Shown: positions 50,649 through 64,000, counted from the stretch's first letter. The stretch: 64,000 bases of DNA from Hyalangium minutum (GCF_000737315.1 NZ_JMCB01000007.1:1-64000), one strand, 5' to 3'. Program-made: numbers and translations. The notes: generated by a model not told the origin, from the letters alone.

Positions 50649-52727
50649 TCAGTTGCCGTTCAGCCAGCGCTCATAGGCCTCGAAGCCGTACTCGCGGCCG
50701 AGGAAGTCCTTCACCAGCAGTGCGGCATCCTTGGCGCCACCAGGCTCGAGCACGGTGTGGCGGTAGCGCATGGCGGGCGCGGGGTTCATGAGGCCCTCGG
50801 CCTGGAAGGGCGTGAAGAGGTCCTTCGCGATCACCAGCGACCACATATAGGTGTAGTAGGCCGCCGAGTACCCATCGAGGTGGCCGAAGGACAGGTGGAA
50901 GTAGGTGTCCGAGGCGTACTTGAAGGGCGTGTACTTCTCCTGGAGCTGCTTCACCATGGCGGTGGTGTCCAGGCCCTTGGGGTCGCGGTTGTAGAGGCCC
51001 AGGCTGATGGACGCGTAGAACATCTGCTGGCGCACCCCGAGCCCCTTGCCGAACTCGTCCGCCTTCTTCATGCGGCCGATGAGGTCCGTGGGCAGAGGCT
51101 CGTTGGACTGGTAGTGCTTGGCGAACGTCTGGAGCGACTCCGGGGACCAGGCCCACTCCTCGAGCATCTGCGAGGGGGCCTCGACGAAGTCCATCTCGGT
51201 GCGGGTGCCGGAGATGCCCGCCCAGCGCGCGCGGCCGCCGAGGATGTGGTGCAGCAGGTGGCCGAACTCGTGGAAGAAGGTCTCCACGTCGGTGTGCTGC
51301 ATGAGCGCGGGCTCGGCGCCGGGCTTGGGGAAGTTGCACATCAGCACGCCCTCGGGGAGCGTCTTGCCGGCCCTGCCGCTGGCCAAATCCCACTGCGCCG
51401 CGTGCTTGTACTTGTTCTCGCGCGGGTGCATGTCCAGGAAGATGCGGCCCAGCAGCGTGGAGCCCTCGTAGATGTCATAGGTCTCGATGTCCGGGGACCA
51501 GACCTTCGCGTCCGCCACGCGCTTGTAGGTGATGCCGAACATGCGCGAGGTGATGTCCAGCACGCCGTCGCGCACGCGGGTGTACTCGAGGTAGGGGCGC
51601 ACGGCCTGCGAGTCGAAGTTGTACTGCTCGGCCTTCACCCGGTCCTCGAGGTACGGCTGGTCCCACGGGTTGACGACGGCGGCCTTCGGGTCGTCCTTGC
51701 GCTTGCGGGCCAGCAGCGTGTCGTAGTCGGCCTTGGCGCGGGCGCCGGAGACGGTCGTGATCTTCTCGATGAAGTCCGCGGCGGCCTTCTCCGTGCGGAT
51801 CATCTTGTCCTCGGTGGTGTAGGCGGCCCAGTTCGGGTAGCCCAGCAGCGTGGCCAGCTCGTAGCGCTTGGAGAGCATGCGCGACAGGGTGTCGAGGTTC
51901 TTCGGGTAGCCGCGCTGGCGGTAGACGCGCCAGAGGGCTTCGCGGGCCTTGGCGCTCTTGGCGTACGCCATGAACGGCGTGTAGTCCGGATAGTCCGTGG
52001 TGATGCGCACCTTGCCGTTGGCGCCGGGGGCGTGGGCGCGCACGTAGTCGTCAGGCAGGCCCGCGAGCTCCTTGGGATCCAGCTCCACGCTGCGCACGTC
52101 CTCGCGGATGTTCTTGCCGAACTCCTGGCCAATCTTGGTGAGCTCCTCCTTGAGTGCGAGCACCTGGGTGCGGGTGGCCTCGTCCTTGTCCACGCCGACA
52201 CGGCGGAAGTCGCGCAGCTGGTGGCTCACGTACTGCTTCGTGGCGCCGTCCTGCTGGCTCAAGTCCAAGCTGGACAGCACGTCATAGACGCCGCGATCCA
52301 GGCCGATCTCGGTGACGGCCTTCTCCACCTCGGTCTCGCACTCCTGGGAGACGGTGCGCATGGCCTCGTCCGGGTGCGAGTTGGTGGCGATGGCGGCGCG
52401 CCCGGCGGTGTTGGCGAGCAGGGCCACGGCCTCGTCGAAGATCTCCAGCGCCGCGACGGTCTCCCGAGGCGCCGGCAGCGCCTTGAAGCGGGCGATGGAG
52501 TCCCGGGCCTTCTGGATGTCCTGGCGGCAGGACGCCTGGAACTGAGGCGCAGTGCCCGTCAGATGGCGCGCCGCGTCTGGAACCAGGGCCGCAGGGCGGG
52601 GAGCCGCCGCGGCAGCCGGGGTGGGGGCCTCCTGGGAGGAGGCCTGGGAGTCAGGGGTGTTGGCGGTGGAACTGGCGCACCCTGCGAGCGCAGAGGCGGC
52701 CACGAGAGCAAGTGTGAGGCGACGCAC
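50649..52727 (-). CDS. M3-family (thimet oligopeptidase-like) metallopeptidase lipoprotein
   Basis: Lipobox LAGC, LDMHPRENKYKHAA, FHEFGHLLH, DFVEAPSQMLEEW and YYTYMWS. Confidence 0.95.
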   Translation of the reverse strand: MRRLTLALVAASALAGCASSTANTPDSQASSQEAPTPAAAAAPRPAALVPDAARHLTGTAPQFQASCRQDIQKARDSIARFKALPAPRETVAALEIFDEAVALLANTAGRAAIATNSHPDEAMRTVSQECETEVEKAVTEIGLDRGVYDVLSSLDLSQQDGATKQYVSHQLRDFRRVGVDKDEATRTQVLALKEELTKIGQEFGKNIREDVRSVELDPKELAGLPDDYVRAHAPGANGKVRITTDYPDYTPFMAYAKSAKAREALWRVYRQRGYPKNLDTLSRMLSKRYELATLLGYPNWAAYTTEDKMIRTEKAAADFIEKITTVSGARAKADYDTLLARKRKDDPKAAVVNPWDQPYLEDRVKAEQYNFDSQAVRPYLEYTRVRDGVLDITSRMFGITYKRVADAKVWSPDIETYDIYEGSTLLGRIFLDMHPRENKYKHAAQWDLASGRAGKTLPEGVLMCNFPKPGAEPALMQHTDVETFFHEFGHLLHHILGGRARWAGISGTRTEMDFVEAPSQMLEEWAWSPESLQTFAKHYQSNEPLPTDLIGRMKKADEFGKGLGVRQQMFYASISLGLYNRDPKGLDTTAMVKQLQEKYTPFKYASDTYFHLSFGHLDGYSAAYYTYMWSLVIAKDLFTPFQAEGLMNPAPAMRYRHTVLEPGGAKDAALLVKDFLGREYGFEAYERWLNGN

Positions 52728-52881
52728 GGGGTAGGTCCCTTCAGAGGATGGGGCGGCGGGTTTTAACCCAGGACGGGCCGAAACATTTCTTCACGGAACG
52801 GCAATAGCGGGCCAAAGGGGCCCGTATTGAATGGCGGCTACTGGATGGGCGCGGCCGGCGCCCTGGACAGGGGAGCCCTTC

Positions 52882-53481
52882 ATGGTGCTGGAGACGAGCC
52901 AGGAGATTGGACGCGAGCCCGTGGTGTTCGGCCACGCGCTGGAGACCTTGCTGGCCGAGGCGGAGGTGCTGGCGCCGCACACGCTGGACGAGTTCGCGCG
53001 GCTGGGCCTGTCTCCGCTGCACCAGCTGGAGGTGGCCTACCCAGTGGAGGTGTGGTCCGAGGCGCTGCGGATCCTCGTCCAGGCGCTCTCGGCGGATGTG
53101 GGCACGGCGGCGGCGGAGTTCCTGCTGGGCCAGCGCTACTCGGAGCGGTCCCTGAGCTCGCGAATCGGCTCGGCCATGAACGCGCATGCCAAGGTGGTGG
53201 GCCCGGAGCGGACGCTGATGCGCACGGCGCGCAACCTGCGCATGGTCAACAACTTCTTCGACGCCACCGTGCGCGAACTGCCGGGCGGCAGGGGCTGGGA
53301 GCTGGTGACGAAGCCGCTGGTGCAGTTCGCTCTGTCGAGCAAGCGCCTGATGGATCCTCCCCACTTCCTGCGGGGTGTGCTCAGCAAGGCTCTGGAGGCG
53401 GCCGGTGCCAAGGGCGTCCGCATGGAGCTGGTGGAGCACGACGAGGTGCTCGGCACCGCCACGTTCCACATCTTCTTCTGA
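52882..53481 (+). CDS. DUF2378 (TIGR02265) myxobacterial protein
   Basis: VVFGHALETLL...LEVAYPVEVW...LGQRY...VGPERTL...GVLSKALE. RBS GGGGAG. Confidence 0.78.
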   Translation: MVLETSQEIGREPVVFGHALETLLAEAEVLAPHTLDEFARLGLSPLHQLEVAYPVEVWSEALRILVQALSADVGTAAAEFLLGQRYSERSLSSRIGSAMNAHAKVVGPERTLMRTARNLRMVNNFFDATVRELPGGRGWELVTKPLVQFALSSKRLMDPPHFLRGVLSKALEAAGAKGVRMELVEHDEVLGTATFHIFF

Positions 53482-53493
53482 GCGTGAGGGGCC

Positions 53494-54276
53494 TCACGCC
53501 TTGAGCTGGAAGAAGCGCTCGGCGTTCTCGTTGGCCACGCGCCGGACGATGCGGTCGGAGAGGTTGGCCTTCGCCAGCAGGCGGGCCAGGCGCGCCAGCC
53601 CGAGTATGTCCCCGGCGCCATCTCCCGCATCCGAGTTGAGCACCAGCCGCTCGCTGCCGAGCTTCCGCACCAGCGCCACCGCGCGCTCGGCCTTGAGCGC
53701 CTCCGGGTGCAGCGTCAGCCCCGCCCAGTGTCCGCAGCCCAGGATGGCACTCACCGTGCGCCCCGTGGCGTGGTCCACCAGCACCCGTGTGGGCAGCACC
53801 CCCGAGGTGCGCAGCAGTGTGAGGATGCGCCGGGTGTGCCGCTCCTTGTCCTGCAGCGGTGTGTGCACCACCACCCGCAGCTTCAGCCGCCGCGCCAGCG
53901 CCAGCTGCTCCAGGAAGGCCTCCTCCTCCTCCTCGCCGCCCGCGTGCAGCCCCGTCTCTCCCAGCGCCACCACGCGCCCACCTTGGAAGTAGTCCGGCAG
54001 GCGCGAGAGCACCTCGGACAGCCCTCGCCGGGGGATGCAGCGCGGGTGCACCCCGAGCGCCGCATACGCCCGGATGCCCAGCTTCTCCAGCCGTGGCAGC
54101 TGCCGACCCACCAGGTCATCGAAGTGCGCCAGCAGCGACTTGGCCGTGGGCTCCGCGAAGTGGTGCGCCACCACCAGCGCCCGCTCCACCCCGAAGAAGC
54201 GCATGGACTCCAGGTCCTGATTGCTCAGGGCCTCCGGGTGCAGGTGCGCGTCGAAGAGGCTGGGAAGTTCTGGCAC
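53494..54276 (-). CDS. TatD-family hydrolase
   Basis: FDAHLH, LGVHPR, ALGETG, VVVHTP, LVDH and LNSD. Confidence 0.93.
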   Translation of the reverse strand: MPELPSLFDAHLHPEALSNQDLESMRFFGVERALVVAHHFAEPTAKSLLAHFDDLVGRQLPRLEKLGIRAYAALGVHPRCIPRRGLSEVLSRLPDYFQGGRVVALGETGLHAGGEEEEEAFLEQLALARRLKLRVVVHTPLQDKERHTRRILTLLRTSGVLPTRVLVDHATGRTVSAILGCGHWAGLTLHPEALKAERAVALVRKLGSERLVLNSDAGDGAGDILGLARLARLLAKANLSDRIVRRVANENAERFFQLKA

Positions 54277-54708
54277 GGGCGGCGTTCTCTCGGTGCTGAG
54301 GACCGAAACCTATAACCCGAGGACGACGCGCCGCCGTCGCTTTCCCAAAACTCATGGGCCCCGTAACGCTCGATACAGGGCACTTCCCCCATTGCCTCTT
54401 GTCCGCAGCCTCATTTCCTGGCTCTTTTCGCCCGCAGTTTTTCGGGGGGACCCGGTACGGAGTTTCACCATGGTCAGAGAATTTTACTTGTACGGGTGTA
54501 AGAATCCGCACAAGATGGAAAACGCCATGAGTCGCCAACCGGGGGTTCTGATGAGCACCACCGCGAAGCCCATGCAGCACCCACCTTCACCCTCCCAGGA
54601 GGTGAAGGTGTTCTACCGCCCACGGTTCGGGATCCGGGCCGAGAGTGGTGGGTTGTGTGTAGAGGTCAGCGCGCTTCCAGAGAAGGACAAGGGCGAGCCC
54701 CCTCGCGG

Positions 54709-54737
54709 TTGACGATCAGAAACGGGCTCCCTATTTC
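54709..54737 (+). promoter_or_regulatory. Sigma70-like promoter candidate for glmU
   Basis: TTGACG, 17-bp spacer, TATTTC. The ATG follows 8 nt later and there is no Shine-Dalgarno sequence. Confidence 0.4.
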
Positions 54738-54745
54738 TCCGCCGC

Positions 54746-56134
54746 ATGTCCTCTCCCTTAGCGGCGGTGGTGTTGTGTGCCGGCAAGGGCACCCGGATGA
54801 AGTCCGAGAAGGCCAAGGTCCTTCACGCCATTCTGGGCAGGCCCCTGTGTTTCTATCCTCTGAAGCGCGCGCTTGAGCTGGGCGCCTCTCCGCTGGTTCC
54901 GGTGGTGGGCCATCAGGCCGCCGAGGTGGAGAAGGCCATCCAGGCGCAGCTCCCCGCGGCCACGCTGCGCTTCGCGCTCCAGAAGGAGCAGCGCGGCACC
55001 GCGGATGCGGTGCGCTCGGCTGAGGGGGCGCTGAAGGACTTCTCGGGCCGCGTCCTCATCCTCTATGGAGATGTGCCGCTGCTGCGCCGTGAGACGCTGG
55101 AGGCGCTGGTGGCCGCGCACGAGAAGGGCAAGGCCACGCTCTCCATGGTCGCCACGGTGCTGGACGACCCCACGGGCTACGGCCGCGTCATCCGCGAGGG
55201 TGGCAAGGTGGTGCGCATCGTCGAGCACAAGGACGCCACCCCGGAGCAGCGTGCCGTGCGCGAGTGCAACGCGGGCATCTACCTGGTGGAGTCCTCGTTC
55301 CTCTGGAAGGCGCTGGCGGAGATCCAACCGCAGAACGCCCAGGGCGAGTACTACCTGACGGATCTGGTGGAGATGGCGGCGAAGCTGGGGCCCGTGGCCT
55401 CGGTGGAGGCGGACGCCACGGAGACGGCGGGTGTGAATGATCGCGTGGAGCTGGCGGCGCGCGCTCGCGTGCTGCAGCAGCGGATCAACGAGCGCCACAT
55501 GCGCGCGGGCGTCACCCTGGTGGACCCGCCCAGCACCTTCATCGAGGAGGACGTCACCATCGGCGCGGACACGGAGCTCGGTCCGCAGGTGATGCTAGCA
55601 GCCGGCTCCGTGGTCGGGCGCAACGTCACCATCGGGCAGGGGAGCGTGCTGACGGCCTCCTCGGTGGCGGACGGCACCACCATCAAGCCCTACTCGGTCT
55701 TCGAGGAGGCCAAGGTGGGCGAGCGCTGCATCATCGGCCCGTTCTCCCGCCTGCGCCCGGGCACCGAGCTGTCCGAGGAAGTGCACCTGGGCAACTTCGT
55801 GGAGACGAAGAAGGCCCGGATCGGCAAGGGCTCCAAGGCCAACCACCTGGCGTACCTGGGCGACGCGAAGATCGGCTCGGGCTGCAACGTGGGGGCCGGC
55901 ACCATCACCTGCAACTATGACGGAGTGAACAAGCACGTCACCGAGTTGGGCGATGGCGTCTTCATCGGCTCCGACACACAGTTGGTCGCGCCAGTGAGCG
56001 TGGGTGATGGCGCGTACGTCGGCGCGGGGACAACCGTGACGAAAAATGTACCGCCTGGGAGCCTCGCTGTGTCCAGGGTGCCTCAGGTGAACAAGGAGGG
56101 CTGGGTCGCGAAGAAGAAGGCTCGGCAGGGATAA
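54746..56134 (+). CDS. glmU: Bifunctional UDP-GlcNAc pyrophosphorylase / GlcN-1-P acetyltransferase
   Basis: [30 protein letters not shown], hexapeptide repeats, NFVETKK and TITCNYDG. Confidence 0.98.
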
Positions 56135-56293
56135 CTTCTTGATTTTCGGGCGGTTTCCGAGGGCCGCCCTGGCCACGCTACAATGGCGCGGCTCTTGCTC
56201 GGTAAGAAAACCGGAAGACGGCGAGACACAGTGGCTCGGGAGCCCGCGGAGCATCTCCGAGGAGCTCGGGTGAGTGAGAGAGGGGTCTGAAAC

Positions 56294-58129
<1,836 letters not shown>

Positions 58130-58167: not shown

Positions 58168-58210
58168 AAGCCCGGGTGCCTCCTCAGCGAGGTCCCGGGC
58201 TTTGTTGTTT
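58168..58210 (+). terminator. Terminator after glmS
   Basis: AAGCCCGGG...CCCGGGCTT stem followed by TGTTGTTT. Confidence 0.75.
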
Positions 58211-58271
58211 CAATTTTGTTGTTTCACCCAGAGCGTGACCCATTGGGTATTGCTAGCATGGGAAAAATACG

Positions 58272-58290
58272 TTACCTATAGAATAGGTAA
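58272..58290. promoter_or_regulatory. Perfect 8-3-8 palindrome (operator candidate)
   Basis: TTACCTAT-AGA-ATAGGTAA lies in an AT-rich segment and ends 26 bp before the ATG at 58317. Confidence 0.55.
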
Positions 58291-58316
58291 GTTCTCACCC
58301 ACCCCAGGTCCCTCTC

Positions 58317-60887
58317 ATGGAAGCTTCGGAACGCAATTCGACGGTGGACTCCATTCATCAGGAGGCCATTCAGCATGGGATCTACTTCCTCAATCCGGAT
58401 GACCAGGAGCTTCACGGCCGCACCTTCAAGCTGCAGGGCCAGGAGCTGCTGTCGTTCGCCTCGTGCTCGTACCTGGGACTGGAGCAGCACCCCCAGCTCG
58501 TCGAAGGCGTGATCCATGCGGCGAAGAAGTACGGGACCCAGTTCTCGGCCACGCGTGGCTTCGTCTCAGCGCCGCCGTACGGAGAGCTGGAGGCGCTCAT
58601 GTCTGAGCTGCTGGGGGGCTACGCGATCGTCTGTTCCTCCACCTCGCTGGGGCACCAGTCGGCGCTGGGCGTGCTCGCTACGGAGAAGGACGCGATCGTC
58701 CTGGATCACCAGGCCCACTACAGCATCCAGCAGGCCGTGCAGATCTGCCGCACCTCCGGTTGTCACGTGGAGATCGTGAAGCACGGCGAGCTGGAGCGCG
58801 CCCTGGAGGCCATCCAGCGGCTGGCGTCGATCCGCAAGACGGTCTGGTTCTGCGTGGACGGTGTCTACAGCATGTATGGCGACCTGGTGCCCATCGAGCT
58901 GCTGCGCGAGGCGCTGAAGATCGCTCCCAACGTGCGGCTCTACGTGGATGACGCGCACGGCATGAGCTGGGTGGGCAAGCACGGCCGGGGCAGCTTCCTC
59001 ACGCGGTTTGGCTTCAACGAGCGCGTTGTGCTGGCCACCTCGCTGAACAAGGCGTTCGCGGCCGGCGGCGGATGCCTGCTGTTCGCCACGGACAAGGAGC
59101 GCCAGTACGTCCGCAAGACGGGTGGCCCGCTGTTCTTCTCGGGCCCGTTGCAGCCTCCCATGCTCGGCGCGGCCATGGCCTCCGCGCGGCTCCACCTGTC
59201 ACAAGAGATCTACCAGCACCAGGAGATCCTCCAGGAGCGCATCCGACTGGCCAACCGGCTGATCCGTGAGGAGGGCCTGCCGCTGCTCGTGGAGAACGAG
59301 ACGCCCATCTTCTTCCTGCGTCTGGGCCTGCCCCGGCTCGGCTTCAAGGTGGCCCGGCGGATGATGGACGAGGGCATCTACGTGACGCCCTCCGTGTACC
59401 CCACCGTGCCCATGCGCCGCGGCGGCATCCGCTTGTCTCTCACCGCGTATCACACGAACGAAGATGTGGAGCAGGTCATCAAGCGGCTGGCCGTGCACAT
59501 CCCCACAGTGCTGGCGGAGGAGGGGCTCACGGTCGACAACCTGGATGACGAGTTCCGCCACGCGCTGCCGGGCAAGGGCCGGTTCGCCGCGCGCGCTCGG
59601 GCGCCACTCCAGGAGCTGATCCAGCGGCTCATCGTCGAGCAGGAGTCTCCTGAGACTGAGCTGGTGGCGACCGGCAAGCGGCCGCTGGAGTCCGCGGAGC
59701 ACCTCACCGTCGAGAAATACACCTCCATCTGGCAGGTGGATAAGGAGCTGTGGAACTCGATGCTGGGCACCGTCGGCTTCATCAGCTGGGACTCGCTGAT
59801 GATGCAGGAGCAGGTATTTACGGACGCCGCCGAGCCTGAGAACTGTTGGCAGTTCCTCTATGTGCTCGTCCGCGACCGAGCGGGCCGCGTCCTCGCCGCG
59901 GCGCCTTTCACGGTGGCGCTGTGCAAGGACGACATGCTCATGCGCGAAGAGGTCTCCCAGAAGGTGGAGGAGCGGCGCAAGGAGGATCCCTACTTCCTGT
60001 CCTCCAAGGCGCTGCTGCTGGGAACGCTCTTGTCCGAGGGCAACCACCTGTACCTGGACCGCTCGGGCCCCTGGCGCGCCGCGCTCACCCGGCTGCTGGA
60101 GGTGGCACGCGAGGAGTACGACAAGAACCGCTGCTCGGTGATGACGATGAGAGATCTCCCAGCGGACGACAACGAGATGGATCAGGAACTGCTCCACCAC
60201 GGGCTGGTGAAGGTGCCCATGTTGGACTCCCATGTGCTCAACATCACCTGGTGGACCGAGGAGGAGTACCTGGCCACCTTGACGAAGCGGAAGCGCGAGC
60301 ACCTGCGCGAGCGCATTGCTCAGTCCAAGTTCTACGAGCGGCGCGTGCACGGCGTGGGCGTGGGCGAGACACTCTCCGTGGAAGAGCTCGAGCACCTGCA
60401 CTCGCTGTATTTGAACGTGGCCAAGAAGGCCATGCGTCTCAACGTGTTTCACCTGCCGCTTCAACTGCTGGCCGCCATGCACGAGTCTCCGGCCTGGGAG
60501 CTCGTTACGCTCCGGCTGGATCCGGCTCACGGAGGCCCTGCCCATGGCCGCCCGGTCGCCTTCTACGCCGGTTACAAGCAGGACGCCCACTACGGCGCCT
60601 TCCTCTGTGGGGTTGATTATGACTACGTGTATCAGCACGGCGCGTACCGCCAGATGCTGTTTCAAATCATTCGCCGTGCCATGGAGCTGGGAACAAAAAC
60701 AGTTCACCTCGGAATGACCGCAAACCTGGAGAAACTCCGCTTCGGCACCGTGGCTCAGCGCACGTGTGTTTACATGCAGGCGAGAGATCACTTCAGCGGT
60801 GCGCTGCTGCGAGAGATCGCCGCCGAGGCCAGCCTGAGCAGCACCCACTCGCCTGCCAACAAGCCCGCTAACGCATCTCCCGGGTAG
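58317..60887 (+). CDS. Alpha-oxoamine synthase (PLP, class II) fused to a FemAB-like tandem GNAT domain
   Basis: FASCSYLGL, LDHQAHYSI, DGVYSMYGD, YVDDAHG, TSLNKAF (PLP Lys), YPTVP and IRLSLTAYH. The C-terminal ~400 aa have a FemAB/Acetyltransf_6-type pattern (EEYLATL, GRPVAF, GVDY, VHLG...EKLRFG). Confidence 0.9.
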   Translation: MEASERNSTVDSIHQEAIQHGIYFLNPDDQELHGRTFKLQGQELLSFASCSYLGLEQHPQLVEGVIHAAKKYGTQFSATRGFVSAPPYGELEALMSELLGGYAIVCSSTSLGHQSALGVLATEKDAIVLDHQAHYSIQQAVQICRTSGCHVEIVKHGELERALEAIQRLASIRKTVWFCVDGVYSMYGDLVPIELLREALKIAPNVRLYVDDAHGMSWVGKHGRGSFLTRFGFNERVVLATSLNKAFAAGGGCLLFATDKERQYVRKTGGPLFFSGPLQPPMLGAAMASARLHLSQEIYQHQEILQERIRLANRLIREEGLPLLVENETPIFFLRLGLPRLGFKVARRMMDEGIYVTPSVYPTVPMRRGGIRLSLTAYHTNEDVEQVIKRLAVHIPTVLAEEGLTVDNLDDEFRHALPGKGRFAARARAPLQELIQRLIVEQESPETELVATGKRPLESAEHLTVEKYTSIWQVDKELWNSMLGTVGFISWDSLMMQEQVFTDAAEPENCWQFLYVLVRDRAGRVLAAAPFTVALCKDDMLMREEVSQKVEERRKEDPYFLSSKALLLGTLLSEGNHLYLDRSGPWRAALTRLLEVAREEYDKNRCSVMTMRDLPADDNEMDQELLHHGLVKVPMLDSHVLNITWWTEEEYLATLTKRKREHLRERIAQSKFYERRVHGVGVGETLSVEELEHLHSLYLNVAKKAMRLNVFHLPLQLLAAMHESPAWELVTLRLDPAHGGPAHGRPVAFYAGYKQDAHYGAFLCGVDYDYVYQHGAYRQMLFQIIRRAMELGTKTVHLGMTANLEKLRFGTVAQRTCVYMQARDHFSGALLREIAAEASLSSTHSPANKPANASPG

Positions 60888-60941
60888 GGACGGTGGACAA
60901 TAGGCGTGCCCTGGGGCGTAGACTGCGGGGGTCACCCGTGC

Positions 60942-62954
<2,013 letters not shown>

Positions 62955-63019
62955 CGGCAGGGCGTAGCGCCTCTCGGTCCCGTGCTAGCTTCGCGCCCCC
63001 TTTGACCGTGGAGGCTCTC

Positions 63020-64000
63020 GTGCGTCGCTCGCCGTTGCTCGCTGCATTGGGTGTGATGGGGCTCGTCTGGCTGGGAGGCGCGAGCGGTTGCAGCTCGGGA
63101 GACTCGCCCACGCCGCAGCCTCCCGTGGAGCCTCCCCAGGCATCTGGAGAGAAGCTGGCGGGGCTCGAGGGGCCGGTGGAGGTCGTGGTGGATGACCGTG
63201 GGATGCCACACATCTATGCGTCGTCGCTGCATGACGCCGCGCTCGTGCAGGGCTACCTGATGGCGCGCGACCGGTTCCCGCAGATGGAGTTTCTCAAGCG
63301 GAATGTGACGGGGCGGCTGGCCGAGTTCCTCGGCTCGCTGTCCTCCACGTCGGTGGAGAATGACGTCAGCGCCCGGGTGATTGGCTTCAAGCGGGTGGCG
63401 GATCGCGTCTATGCGTCGCTGCCCGTGGGCTCTCCGGAGAAGGCCGCGCTGGATGGCTTCGCTGCGGGCGTCAACGTGTACCTCGGCGAGCTGCGCACCG
63501 GAAAGGCGAAGCTGTCTTCGGGCGCGGAGCTGCTCGGGTTCCTGCTGTCCAACCCCGCGGCGTTCACGGATTGGACGCCGCAGGACTCGGTCGCGATCGG
63601 GCGGTACCTGTCTTACTCGCTGTCGTACGAGGCGGAGCAGGATGTGGCGCTGACGAAGGCGCGCGGGGCTGCTGCTGCGGCGTTCCCGGCGGGCAACCCG
63701 CGCGCGGGTCTCTTCCGTGACTTCTGGTCGTTCGCCCCGTCGCGCGATGTGTTCACGCGCGAGGGCCAGTCGAACGGTGGGCCTGCTCCGAAGCGCAGCC
63801 TGAGCCAGACGCGGCTGCCGGACGTGGAGCTGCTCTCCCAGGCGCAGGGGTTCCTCGATGGGGCCCGGCGGCTGCGGGAGGTGTTCGGTGATGACAACCG
63901 TGGCTCGAACAACTGGGTGGTGTCCGGGGCGAAGACGGCCTCGGGAGCGCCGCTGCTGGCGAATGACCCGCACCTGTCGCTGCCGAGCCCTCCGCTCTTC
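63020..64000 (+). CDS. Penicillin acylase family (S45, Ntn hydrolase) lipoprotein, 3' truncated by the window edge
   Basis: Not in the ORF track. GGAGG precedes GTG 63020. It has lipobox ASGC, VDDRGMPHIYA, GYLMARDRFPQM, beta-subunit start GSNNWVV (Ser codon 63905-63907) and LANDPHL. Confidence 0.93.
   Translation, partial: MRRSPLLAALGVMGLVWLGGASGCSSGDSPTPQPPVEPPQASGEKLAGLEGPVEVVVDDRGMPHIYASSLHDAALVQGYLMARDRFPQMEFLKRNVTGRLAEFLGSLSSTSVENDVSARVIGFKRVADRVYASLPVGSPEKAALDGFAAGVNVYLGELRTGKAKLSSGAELLGFLLSNPAAFTDWTPQDSVAIGRYLSYSLSYEAEQDVALTKARGAAAAAFPAGNPRAGLFRDFWSFAPSRDVFTREGQSNGGPAPKRSLSQTRLPDVELLSQAQGFLDGARRLREVFGDDNRGSNNWVVSGAKTASGAPLLANDPHLSLPSPPLF

Follow-up and report, generated by a model that had tools for sequence, protein, structure and literature searches.

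The window that we analysed is a 64,000-nucleotide stretch of the Hyalangium minutum genome (GCF_000737315.1, NZ_JMCB01000007.1:1-64000). Our subject is a gene near its end, at 58317..60887 on the plus strand, which joins an alpha-oxoamine synthase (AOS) to a tandem GCN5-related N-acetyltransferase (GNAT) in a single polypeptide. Nineteen nucleotides past its stop codon begins the gene of a soluble hybrid sensor kinase (60906..62954, +), whose Pfam domains run PAS-PAS-HisKA-HATPase_c-receiver and in which no transmembrane-like segment is found. No terminator-like site lies between the two genes, and we predict that they form one operon. Linkage of the fusion to sensor kinases recurs across many loci and is the main new finding of this work; it is the most informative feature of the gene and was missing from the initial annotation, which had been made from the sequence of the window alone.

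The open reading frame (ORF) of the fusion is complete, encoding 856 amino acids (aa) plus a stop; it is recognized by Pfam, and its homologues reach E = 0, so that it is a real gene. The ATG is the first start following a stop codon, which makes it credible as the true start. It is further supported by the N-terminus, MEASE, of which M1, E2, and S4 are invariant in 19/19 Myxococcota homologues. The pattern over these five codons (58317-58331), M-E-(A/T/V)-S-(E/D/Q), is unusually invariant for an N-terminus; Bacteroidota matches to the protein mostly begin only at aa 4-11.

The protein has three parts: an AOS domain of the pyridoxal 5'-phosphate (PLP) fold type I (aa 1-419, 58317..59573, +), a disordered linker of ~40 aa (420-457, 59574..59687, +), and a tandem GNAT of ~385 aa, with lobe 1 at aa 464-642 (59706..60242, +) and lobe 2 at aa 648-840 (60258..60836, +). 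In a Pfam scan, the first part matches PF00155 (aa 44-391, E 3.6e-29), and the last matches PF04339 (FemAB_like, aa 471-706, E 5.5e-5, slightly below the gathering score) and PF13480 (Acetyltransf_6, aa 679-802, E 1.3e-8). The limits of lobe 1 follow the secondary structure of an AlphaFold2 (AF2) model and a cross-phylum alignment of 30 sequences. In the full-length AF2 model, both domains are confident, and aa 420-457 are disordered, with a predicted local distance difference test (pLDDT) score below 50. The alignment columns of the linker are gappy and unconserved, varying in sequence and length, and we read it as a flexible tether. The whole-chain predicted template modelling score (pTM) is 0.51; the inter-domain geometry is thus not confident, and we make no argument for channelling from it. 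A tblastn search of the whole window found no paralogue of either half.

The motifs of the AOS half are SCSYLG (aa 49-54), HYS (134-136), DDAHG (211-215), and SLNKAF (242-247), the last containing the Schiff-base lysine, K245 (codon at 59049-59051, +). All four are invariant among 19 diverse full-length Myxococcota homologues, as are, residue by residue, H134, D211, D212, H214, T241, S242, K245, and R372. The intact PLP catalytic set (HYS, DDAHG, SLNKAF) that the initial annotation had pointed out is therefore present and conserved. With the PF00155 match, an invariant set of PLP-stacking His, D-x-A-H, Schiff-base Lys, and C-terminal carboxylate-binding Arg, and template modelling (TM) scores of 0.84-0.88 to solved AOS enzymes, the first half is a bona fide AOS and is probably active.

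It is less straightforward to say which AOS it is. Among NCBIfam models, the best is PRK07505 (NF005697), at 263 bits, below its cutoff of 342. All other models fall much further short: bioF 169 bits against a cutoff of 426; three Spt (serine palmitoyltransferase) models 159/640, 118/500, and 82/670 (score/cutoff); two Kbl models 148/460 and 128/493; HemA 108 against 339; and the CqsA-type equivalog NF005526 80 against 428. CqsA is also the weakest match among AOS classes in PDB (E 8e-9). Controls taken from annotated plasmids pass their own models, with 660/640 bits for an Spt from Prevotella, 451/426 for BioF, 727/493 for Kbl, 650/339 for HemA, and 509 bits against the cutoff of 342 for a rhizobial PRK07505-type AOS. 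Five further fusion AOS domains, from different lineages, reach 248-277 bits on PRK07505, and no other model gives any of them more than 186. A neighbour-joining tree (21 sequences, 406 trimmed columns, 200 bootstraps) agrees: all fusion AOS domains form one clade (200/200), which groups with the Streptomyces albogriseolus enzyme Alb29 and the PRK07505-type enzyme (200/200) and stands apart from BioF, Kbl, Spt, and HemA, the split from Spt again being recovered in 200/200 replicates. The grouping with BioF or Kbl that the initial annotation had named as grounds for abandoning its proposal is thus not seen. By scores and phylogeny, the fusion AOS domains are a sister group of the PRK07505 subfamily, not members of it, and the AOS half is not an Spt, BioF, Kbl, HemA, or CqsA. 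No bio or tdh genes lie beside the fusion in the window.

On this placement, family membership does not predict Ser, Gly, or Ala as the amino acid substrate. Alb29 condenses L-Glu with acyl-CoA (CoA, coenzyme A); crystals of it with L-glutamate have been obtained, and L-Glu is reportedly the only amino acid that it accepts. On the Sinorhizobium meliloti plasmid pEmeLPU88b (locus L084, 2132-8996), a PRK07505-type AOS lies beside dgcN (an N-acetyltransferase) and a Glu/Leu/Phe/Val dehydrogenase, and further adjoins a GntR regulator and an aminotransferase. Together with the use of L-Glu by Alb29, these neighbours hint at glutamate-like substrates across the wider clade, and by this analogy, an acidic amino acid is the only lead on the substrate of the AOS half. 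The suggestion of the initial annotation that the substrate may be new fits well with a closest characterised relative that uses L-Glu.

In the C-terminal half, an AF2 model of aa 455-856 (pLDDT 91.4, pTM 0.88) has two GNAT lobes, and its best PDB matches are tandem GNATs, which upholds the earlier description of a ~400-aa double GNAT. The suggestion that this half is Fem-like also stands, and the comparison with FemX that had been proposed for it came out in its favor: in Foldseek, FemX of Weissella is the best match (E 2e-13), and further matches include Sba18/Sbb17, which are aminoacyl-tRNA-dependent peptide synthases (E 1e-11, TM score over the target (TMt) up to 0.74), the MprF aminoacyl-phosphatidylglycerol synthase domains and FemA (both ~1e-9), and N-myristoyltransferase (~1e-8). 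Sequence models say less. Pfam finds no match to PF02388 (FemAB) in the fusion protein; PF04339 gives the window protein 22.9-26.6 bits against a cutoff of 27 and matches 11/30 family members at E<=0.01; PF13480 matches 27/30; and no NCBIfam model hits this half at E<=0.1.

The pattern of conservation also bears on the donor. Across 30 sequences from Myxococcota to Bacteroidota, Cyanobacteria, and Paenibacillus, 16 residues are invariant, namely W479, E498, Y515, K537, D539, S547, E551, R554, G569, G575, and R612 in lobe 1 and N709, G765, Y777, R787, and K806 in lobe 2, which also carries the motif E-K-(R/K)-(R/K)-F-G. Invariant charged residues line both lobes, whereas catalytic conservation is confined to a single lobe in many tandem GNATs that use acetyl-CoA. 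The CoA pyrophosphate loop, Q/R-x-x-G-x-G/A, occurs in at most 3/30 sequences at any aligned position; at the beta4-alpha3 junction of lobe 2, its place is taken by an invariant Tyr followed by R/K and Q. The missing loop and the charged residues in both lobes lean toward a donor other than CoA.

The initial annotation had called the fusion unusual. It is real, but the architecture is common, and its function is uncharacterised. A database search with the fusion protein gave 1,591 homologues, and the best 120 of these are almost all full-length (~815-890 aa) with the same two domains; several homologues are already named "bifunctional" by NCBI. A scan with one genome for each species detected a relative in at least 587 of these genomes. 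The fusion is found in Myxococcota, Bacteroidota, Longimicrobia, Cyanobacteria, and Paenibacillus and also in a Marinamargulisbacteria metagenome-assembled genome (MAG). Among the matches listed, the closest genomes are Hyalangium/Myxococcaceae MAGs (82-86% identity), followed by other Myxococcota (40-53%), Longimicrobium (~47-50%), a Paenibacillus (39%), many Bacteroidota (33-39%), and Cyanobacteria (~36%). Four homologues (P0036, P0073, P0080, and P0188) are longer, at 910-1,429 aa, one with PF00221 (aromatic amino-acid lyase) before the AOS; larger fusions or errors in gene calling may account for them. A literature search on the AOS-GNAT architecture, DUF7793, and COG3146/DUF482 found no characterisation.

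The C-terminal half is scarcely met outside this arrangement. A search with it against a word-indexed protein database gave only 23 matches, mostly truncated fragments on short contigs and so uninformative about stand-alone relatives; an exhaustive phmmer search was used instead. This found 759 representatives of 50%-identity clusters, 211 of them at E<=1e-30, and the top matches nearly all lie at residues ~430-820 of proteins of ~800-850 aa. Judged from these alignments, the GNAT subfamily exists essentially only fused behind this AOS clade. Such a near-constant association suggests that the fusion is obligate, which in turn favors coupled chemistry between the two halves.

For 81 loci, the genes around the fusion were compared by extracting ORFs, clustering them by all-against-all BLAST, and applying small hidden Markov models (HMMs). 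Only two-component proteins and, in Bacteroidota, DUF7793 recur as neighbours. The kinases are concentrated close to the fusion: 48/55 kinase ORFs lie within 1.5 kb, and their density per 10 kb is 2.9 at 0-0.5 kb and 1.8 at 0.5-1.5 kb, compared with 0.0-0.17 beyond, so that soluble PAS histidine kinases are present within 1.5 kb at about 20-fold the background density. Among the 51 loci with at least 2.5 kb of flank on both sides, 32 have a kinase within 1.5 kb; the number rises to 37 when receivers are counted too and to 39 when DUF7793 is added. In 10 loci, a kinase is the next gene downstream, in the orientation of the fusion. No fewer than five distinct gene arrangements show the linkage, which involves both HisKA and HisKA_3 kinases, and almost all of the kinases are soluble PAS proteins. 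Layouts include the fusion followed by a hybrid kinase, with or without DUF7793 between them; a LuxR-type regulator, HisKA_3 kinase, and DUF7793 divergent from the fusion; and a kinase or receiver gene upstream of it. No other biosynthetic gene is conserved beside the fusion in the examined loci, and the enzyme therefore appears to be self-sufficient. Genes for a reductase, acyl carrier protein (ACP), acyl-ACP synthetase, or lipid transport are not conserved nearby in the 81 loci, nor are genes for the cell wall, resistance, or export.

The DUF7793 protein (~138 aa, SpoIIAA/STAS-like) adjoins the fusion in 39/81 loci, usually between the fusion and the PAS kinase; Bacteroidota examples are L027 (7396-7812, -) and L053 (10423-10839, +). 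A role in carrying a ligand or in partner switching is conceivable.

Several further features surround the operon in the window. A terminator-like hairpin with a T-run follows glmS (58185..58217, +, from a sequence scan) and parts the glmU-glmS unit from the fusion-kinase unit. Between this terminator and the fusion start lies an AT-rich leader or promoter region (58218..58316, +, also delimited as 58208-58316; TTGTTGTTTCAATTTTGTTGTTTCA...) in a genome of 67% GC. Promoter and Rfam scans found no sigma-70 consensus site and no Rfam element in it; it may be a promoter of a class other than sigma-70 or a region where a regulator binds. Farther upstream (50649-58129) are ordinary housekeeping genes, for an M3 oligopeptidase (-), a TatD-like hydrolase (-), glmU (+), and glmS (+). 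A gene for DUF2378, a myxobacterial family (PF09536), lies at 52831-53481 (+), 4.8 kb upstream of the fusion. In an Archangium-type clade of fusions (~41% identical; L016-L019 and L022), a BLAST homologue of this protein stands 21-138 nt upstream on the same strand, perhaps as a partner specific to that lineage. The hybrid kinase is immediately followed by a gene for a penicillin-amidase/Ntn-hydrolase (62990-64000, +, continuing beyond the window; PF01804, E 7e-55), with a lipoprotein-like N-terminus and an SNNW nucleophile motif. It was considered as an acylase that degrades the product, but it recurs only in the closest relative (L001) and is absent from L002 and more distant loci, and thus it is probably not part of the system. 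Finally, an antisense ORF of 1,199 aa (59199..62798, -) overlaps the fusion and kinase genes, and other long, Arg/Ala-rich shadow ORFs occur throughout the window. Long spurious ORFs are common at ~67% G+C, and we infer that these are high-GC artefacts, not genes.

Taken together, these observations are, in our view, best accommodated if the fusion is a self-contained, two-step synthase of an N-acylated or N-aminoacylated amino-ketone that is tied to two-component signalling, a reading to which we assign a probability of roughly 40%. In the first step, as the intact and conserved active site suggests, the AOS domain would form a PLP-amino acid quinonoid, whose decarboxylative Claisen condensation with an acyl thioester would yield an alpha-amino-ketone. 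In the second, suggested by the obligate fusion and the fold, the tethered Fem-type tandem GNAT would acylate the free amine of the new amino-ketone. This order of events, condensation followed by acylation of the amine on one chain, had already been put forward in the initial annotation; it would still be the most economical mechanism, and we consider it somewhat more likely than not. The donor in the second step would be either an aminoacyl group from an aminoacyl-tRNA or an acyl group. The folds of FemX, Sba18, and MprF, the lack of a CoA P-loop, and the conserved residues in both lobes tentatively favor aminoacyl-tRNA, to a slight degree; an acyl group is a possibility to which we give nearly as much weight. 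The PF13480/COG3146 proteins encoded in the argolaphos cluster have been proposed, though not proven, to be aminoacyl-tRNA peptide ligases. If it were N-aminoacylated, the amino-ketone would close into a ring spontaneously, giving a dihydropyrazinone or pyrazinone. In a third step, for which the gene context is the evidence, the product would serve as, or contribute to, a signal that the neighbouring soluble PAS histidine kinase reads, or else the kinase would control synthesis. The frequency of sensor kinases as neighbours makes a synthase of a signal or small metabolite more likely than a sphingolipid enzyme. That the product is itself the ligand of the adjacent kinase is conceivable, though we would put it below even odds.

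A more specific possibility follows from a known chemistry. N-alanyl-aminoacetone cyclises spontaneously to the autoinducer DPO (3,5-dimethylpyrazin-2-ol), for which a dedicated synthase is not known. The fusion might be a single-polypeptide synthase for a new class of diffusible signal, a pyrazinone of the DPO/AI-3 chemotype made with aminoacyl-tRNA and read by the adjacent PAS kinase. We regard this as quite unlikely, but if true, it would mean that a signalling module of synthase and receptor, widely distributed across Bacteroidota and Myxococcota, has so far escaped recognition.

A number of points weigh against the proposed two-step, signalling-linked synthase. With regard to the donor, acetyl-CoA tandem GNATs match the C-terminal half as well (VipF at E 5e-11 and a clavulanate-pathway protein at 3.5e-10), so that, in the models, the fold is Fem-like by a small margin, and the TM score to FemX is modest, 0.52 over the query and 0.61 over the target. 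With a median pI of 5.9 and a net charge of about -8, the half is acidic and lends no support to extensive binding of tRNA. Its cross-phylum profile has no significant match among PDB sequences, and the catalytic residues of Fem and MprF thus cannot be mapped onto it. With regard to signalling, the kinase counts are approximate, as just 5 seeds underlie the kinase HMMs, and the loci are not phylogenetically independent. The linkage also depends on lineage: the copies in Polyangia (Minicystis and others), cyanobacteria, and Paenibacillus are orphans among unrelated neighbours. Moreover, adjacency cannot separate a kinase that senses the product from one that regulates the gene. We had considered that the linked kinases might be one orthologous family of receptors, but across phyla their sensor regions share only generic PAS-level similarity, and the argument from a co-evolving receptor was accordingly dropped. 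Our literature search found no biochemical data on any member of the family.

Several other explanations deserve consideration, two of which place the product in lipid metabolism. The initial annotation proposed a single-chain Spt plus bacterial ceramide synthase, making ceramide or oxo-ceramide. The idea was a natural one, in that Spt is an AOS, the bacterial ceramide synthase is described as GNAT-like, and both Bacteroidota and Myxococcota make sphingolipids. It fails, however, on every line of evidence examined here. The AOS half stays far below the cutoffs of all three Spt models, which a genuine Spt passes, and its clade is split from Spt in every bootstrap replicate; SCSYLG stands in place of the SNNYLG-type motif; the C-terminal half lacks the CoA loop; and the gene is linked to kinases rather than to lipid genes, with none for CerR, ACP, or acyl-ACP synthetase in the examined ~7.7 kb upstream and 3 kb downstream. 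In published work, the pathway is defined by Spt, bCerS (the bacterial ceramide synthase), and CerR, and AOS homologues outside the Spt clade are treated as non-sphingolipid enzymes. We consider this proposal highly improbable, and the tempting sphingolipid annotation is unsupported and should not be applied to the window gene. The other lipid reading, in which a long-chain amino-ketone base from the AOS is N-acylated from acyl-CoA or acyl-ACP to give a ceramide-like or other membrane aminolipid, and not a signal, has more in its favor. Its significant fold matches include tandem GNATs that use acyl-CoA (N-myristoyltransferase, VipF, and the clavulanate-pathway protein), lipids are acted on by the MprF-type domains, which match too, and the acidic C-terminal half is unlike a tRNA binder. 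The phyla concerned are, moreover, lipid-rich and have sphingolipids. But the CoA P-loop is absent family-wide, the genes that lipid synthesis and transport would bring (reductase, ACP, acyl-ACP synthetase, lipid transport) are not conserved nearby, and what recurs beside the fusion is cytoplasmic PAS kinases rather than envelope genes. The fusion protein has no obvious membrane segment on inspection, no dedicated test having been made, and the nearest characterised AOS uses L-Glu in a secondary-metabolite setting. An aminolipid synthase therefore seems unlikely to us.

Another alternative is that the product is a secondary metabolite, such as a peptidyl-ketone protease inhibitor or an antibiotic, and that the two-component system regulates its production without sensing it. 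Alb29 belongs to natural-product biosynthesis, as do the PF13480 proteins of the argolaphos cluster. Many Bacteroidota have a complete, divergent pair of PAS kinase and LuxR-type response regulator, which is the classical layout for transcriptional control, and the orphan copies show that the enzyme can function without a kinase. In Myxococcia-type loci, including the window, on the other hand, the fusion is partnered by a hybrid kinase that lacks a DNA-binding output, lies downstream, and is predicted to be co-transcribed, a layout that fits a synthase and its receptor better than a regulator and its target; nor is any resistance or export gene conserved nearby. We think this explanation about as improbable as the aminolipid one. 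A final possibility is that the GNAT half does not perform a second step on the AOS product, being instead degenerate, regulatory, or a scaffold, or acylating an unrelated acceptor such as a protein or cell-wall precursor. The inter-domain orientation is not confident (pTM 0.51), the Pfam description of PF04339 points to peptidoglycan, and the extra domain of a comparable fusion in Mycobacterium tuberculosis, BioF2, likewise has no assigned role. Yet the 16 residues invariant across phyla, with charged ones in both lobes, form the pattern of an active site, the subfamily occurs essentially only with this AOS clade, and no cell-wall genes are conserved nearby; all three argue for a working enzyme coupled to the AOS, and we judge an uncoupled GNAT to be very unlikely. 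The two-step amino-ketone synthase linked to two-component signalling is the reading that we favor.

How the fusion relates to known systems bears on this reading. AOS enzymes are known from the synthesis of biotin, haem, and sphingolipids and of the signals CAI-1 and LAI-1, and Fem-type GNATs from the aminoacylation of cell wall and lipids and from a few antibiotics. As far as sequence and predicted fold can tell, the fusion combines these known kinds in one bifunctional enzyme, which is real, conserved, and widespread. Among proteins that are solved and characterised, Alb29 (PDB 8XHA, 8XHD, 8I7U, and 8XHK) stands closest to its AOS half, with a phmmer E of 8e-43 over aa 34-387, 32% identity, and a TM score of 0.86 over the target. 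The two have in common the unusual motifs S-x-S-Y-L-G-L, D-(D/E)-A-H-x-x-S, and T-S-L-N-K. But Alb29 is a stand-alone enzyme of ~400 aa with no GNAT half, and the fusion AOS domains form a clade of their own. The PRK07505/NF005697 proteins provide the best curated model for every fusion AOS tested (248-277 bits) and fall in the same larger, well-supported clade; they are, however, single-domain and uncharacterised, and the fusions stay below the cutoff that the rhizobial member clears.

For the C-terminal half, the nearest parallels are the Fem-type transferases FemX of Weissella viridescens, Sba18/Sbb17, and MprF, with a common tandem-GNAT fold (E 2e-13 to 1e-9, TMt 0.61-0.74) and acceptors that include free amines. 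The differences are also clear, as identity is only 13-17%, there is no significant sequence match and no PF02388, and the C-terminal half is acidic. For the architecture as a whole, the parallel is M. tuberculosis BioF2 (Rv0032), an AOS fused to an extra domain of ~350 aa, which we take to be the PF13480-type "BioF2-like acetyltransferase" of InterPro. The likeness is by description only, and the order of domains is reversed, with the extra domain N-terminal. Found only in the M. tuberculosis complex, BioF2 does not rescue a bioF mutant and so is not a BioF, and no function is assigned to it. A known product for the present family could shed light on the unexplained BioF2 fusion, and it would annotate a generically named gene in hundreds of Bacteroidota, Myxococcota, Longimicrobia, and Cyanobacteria.

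The closest parallels to the gene context are CqsA/CqsS and LqsA/LqsS, in which a signal synthase of the AOS family is encoded beside its receptor. CqsS, moreover, is a hybrid sensor kinase. Like CqsA and LqsA, the fusion lies next to a sensor kinase, which is a resemblance of logic and not proof of membership. CqsA has no GNAT half, and the fusion AOS falls far short of the CqsA-type model (80/428 bits); CqsS and LqsS are membrane kinases, whereas the kinases linked to the fusion are soluble PAS proteins. The logic is not confined to kinases, since both CqsA and Lgs are AOS-family signal synthases encoded beside a receptor or regulator, and Lgs makes the ligand of a TetR protein in Bacteroides fragilis. 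By virtue of its kinase linkage, the fusion is a good candidate for a synthase of a signal or regulated metabolite, and the family might reveal a new class of signal, or else an enzyme dedicated to making N-acyl or N-aminoacyl amino-ketones and pyrazinones.

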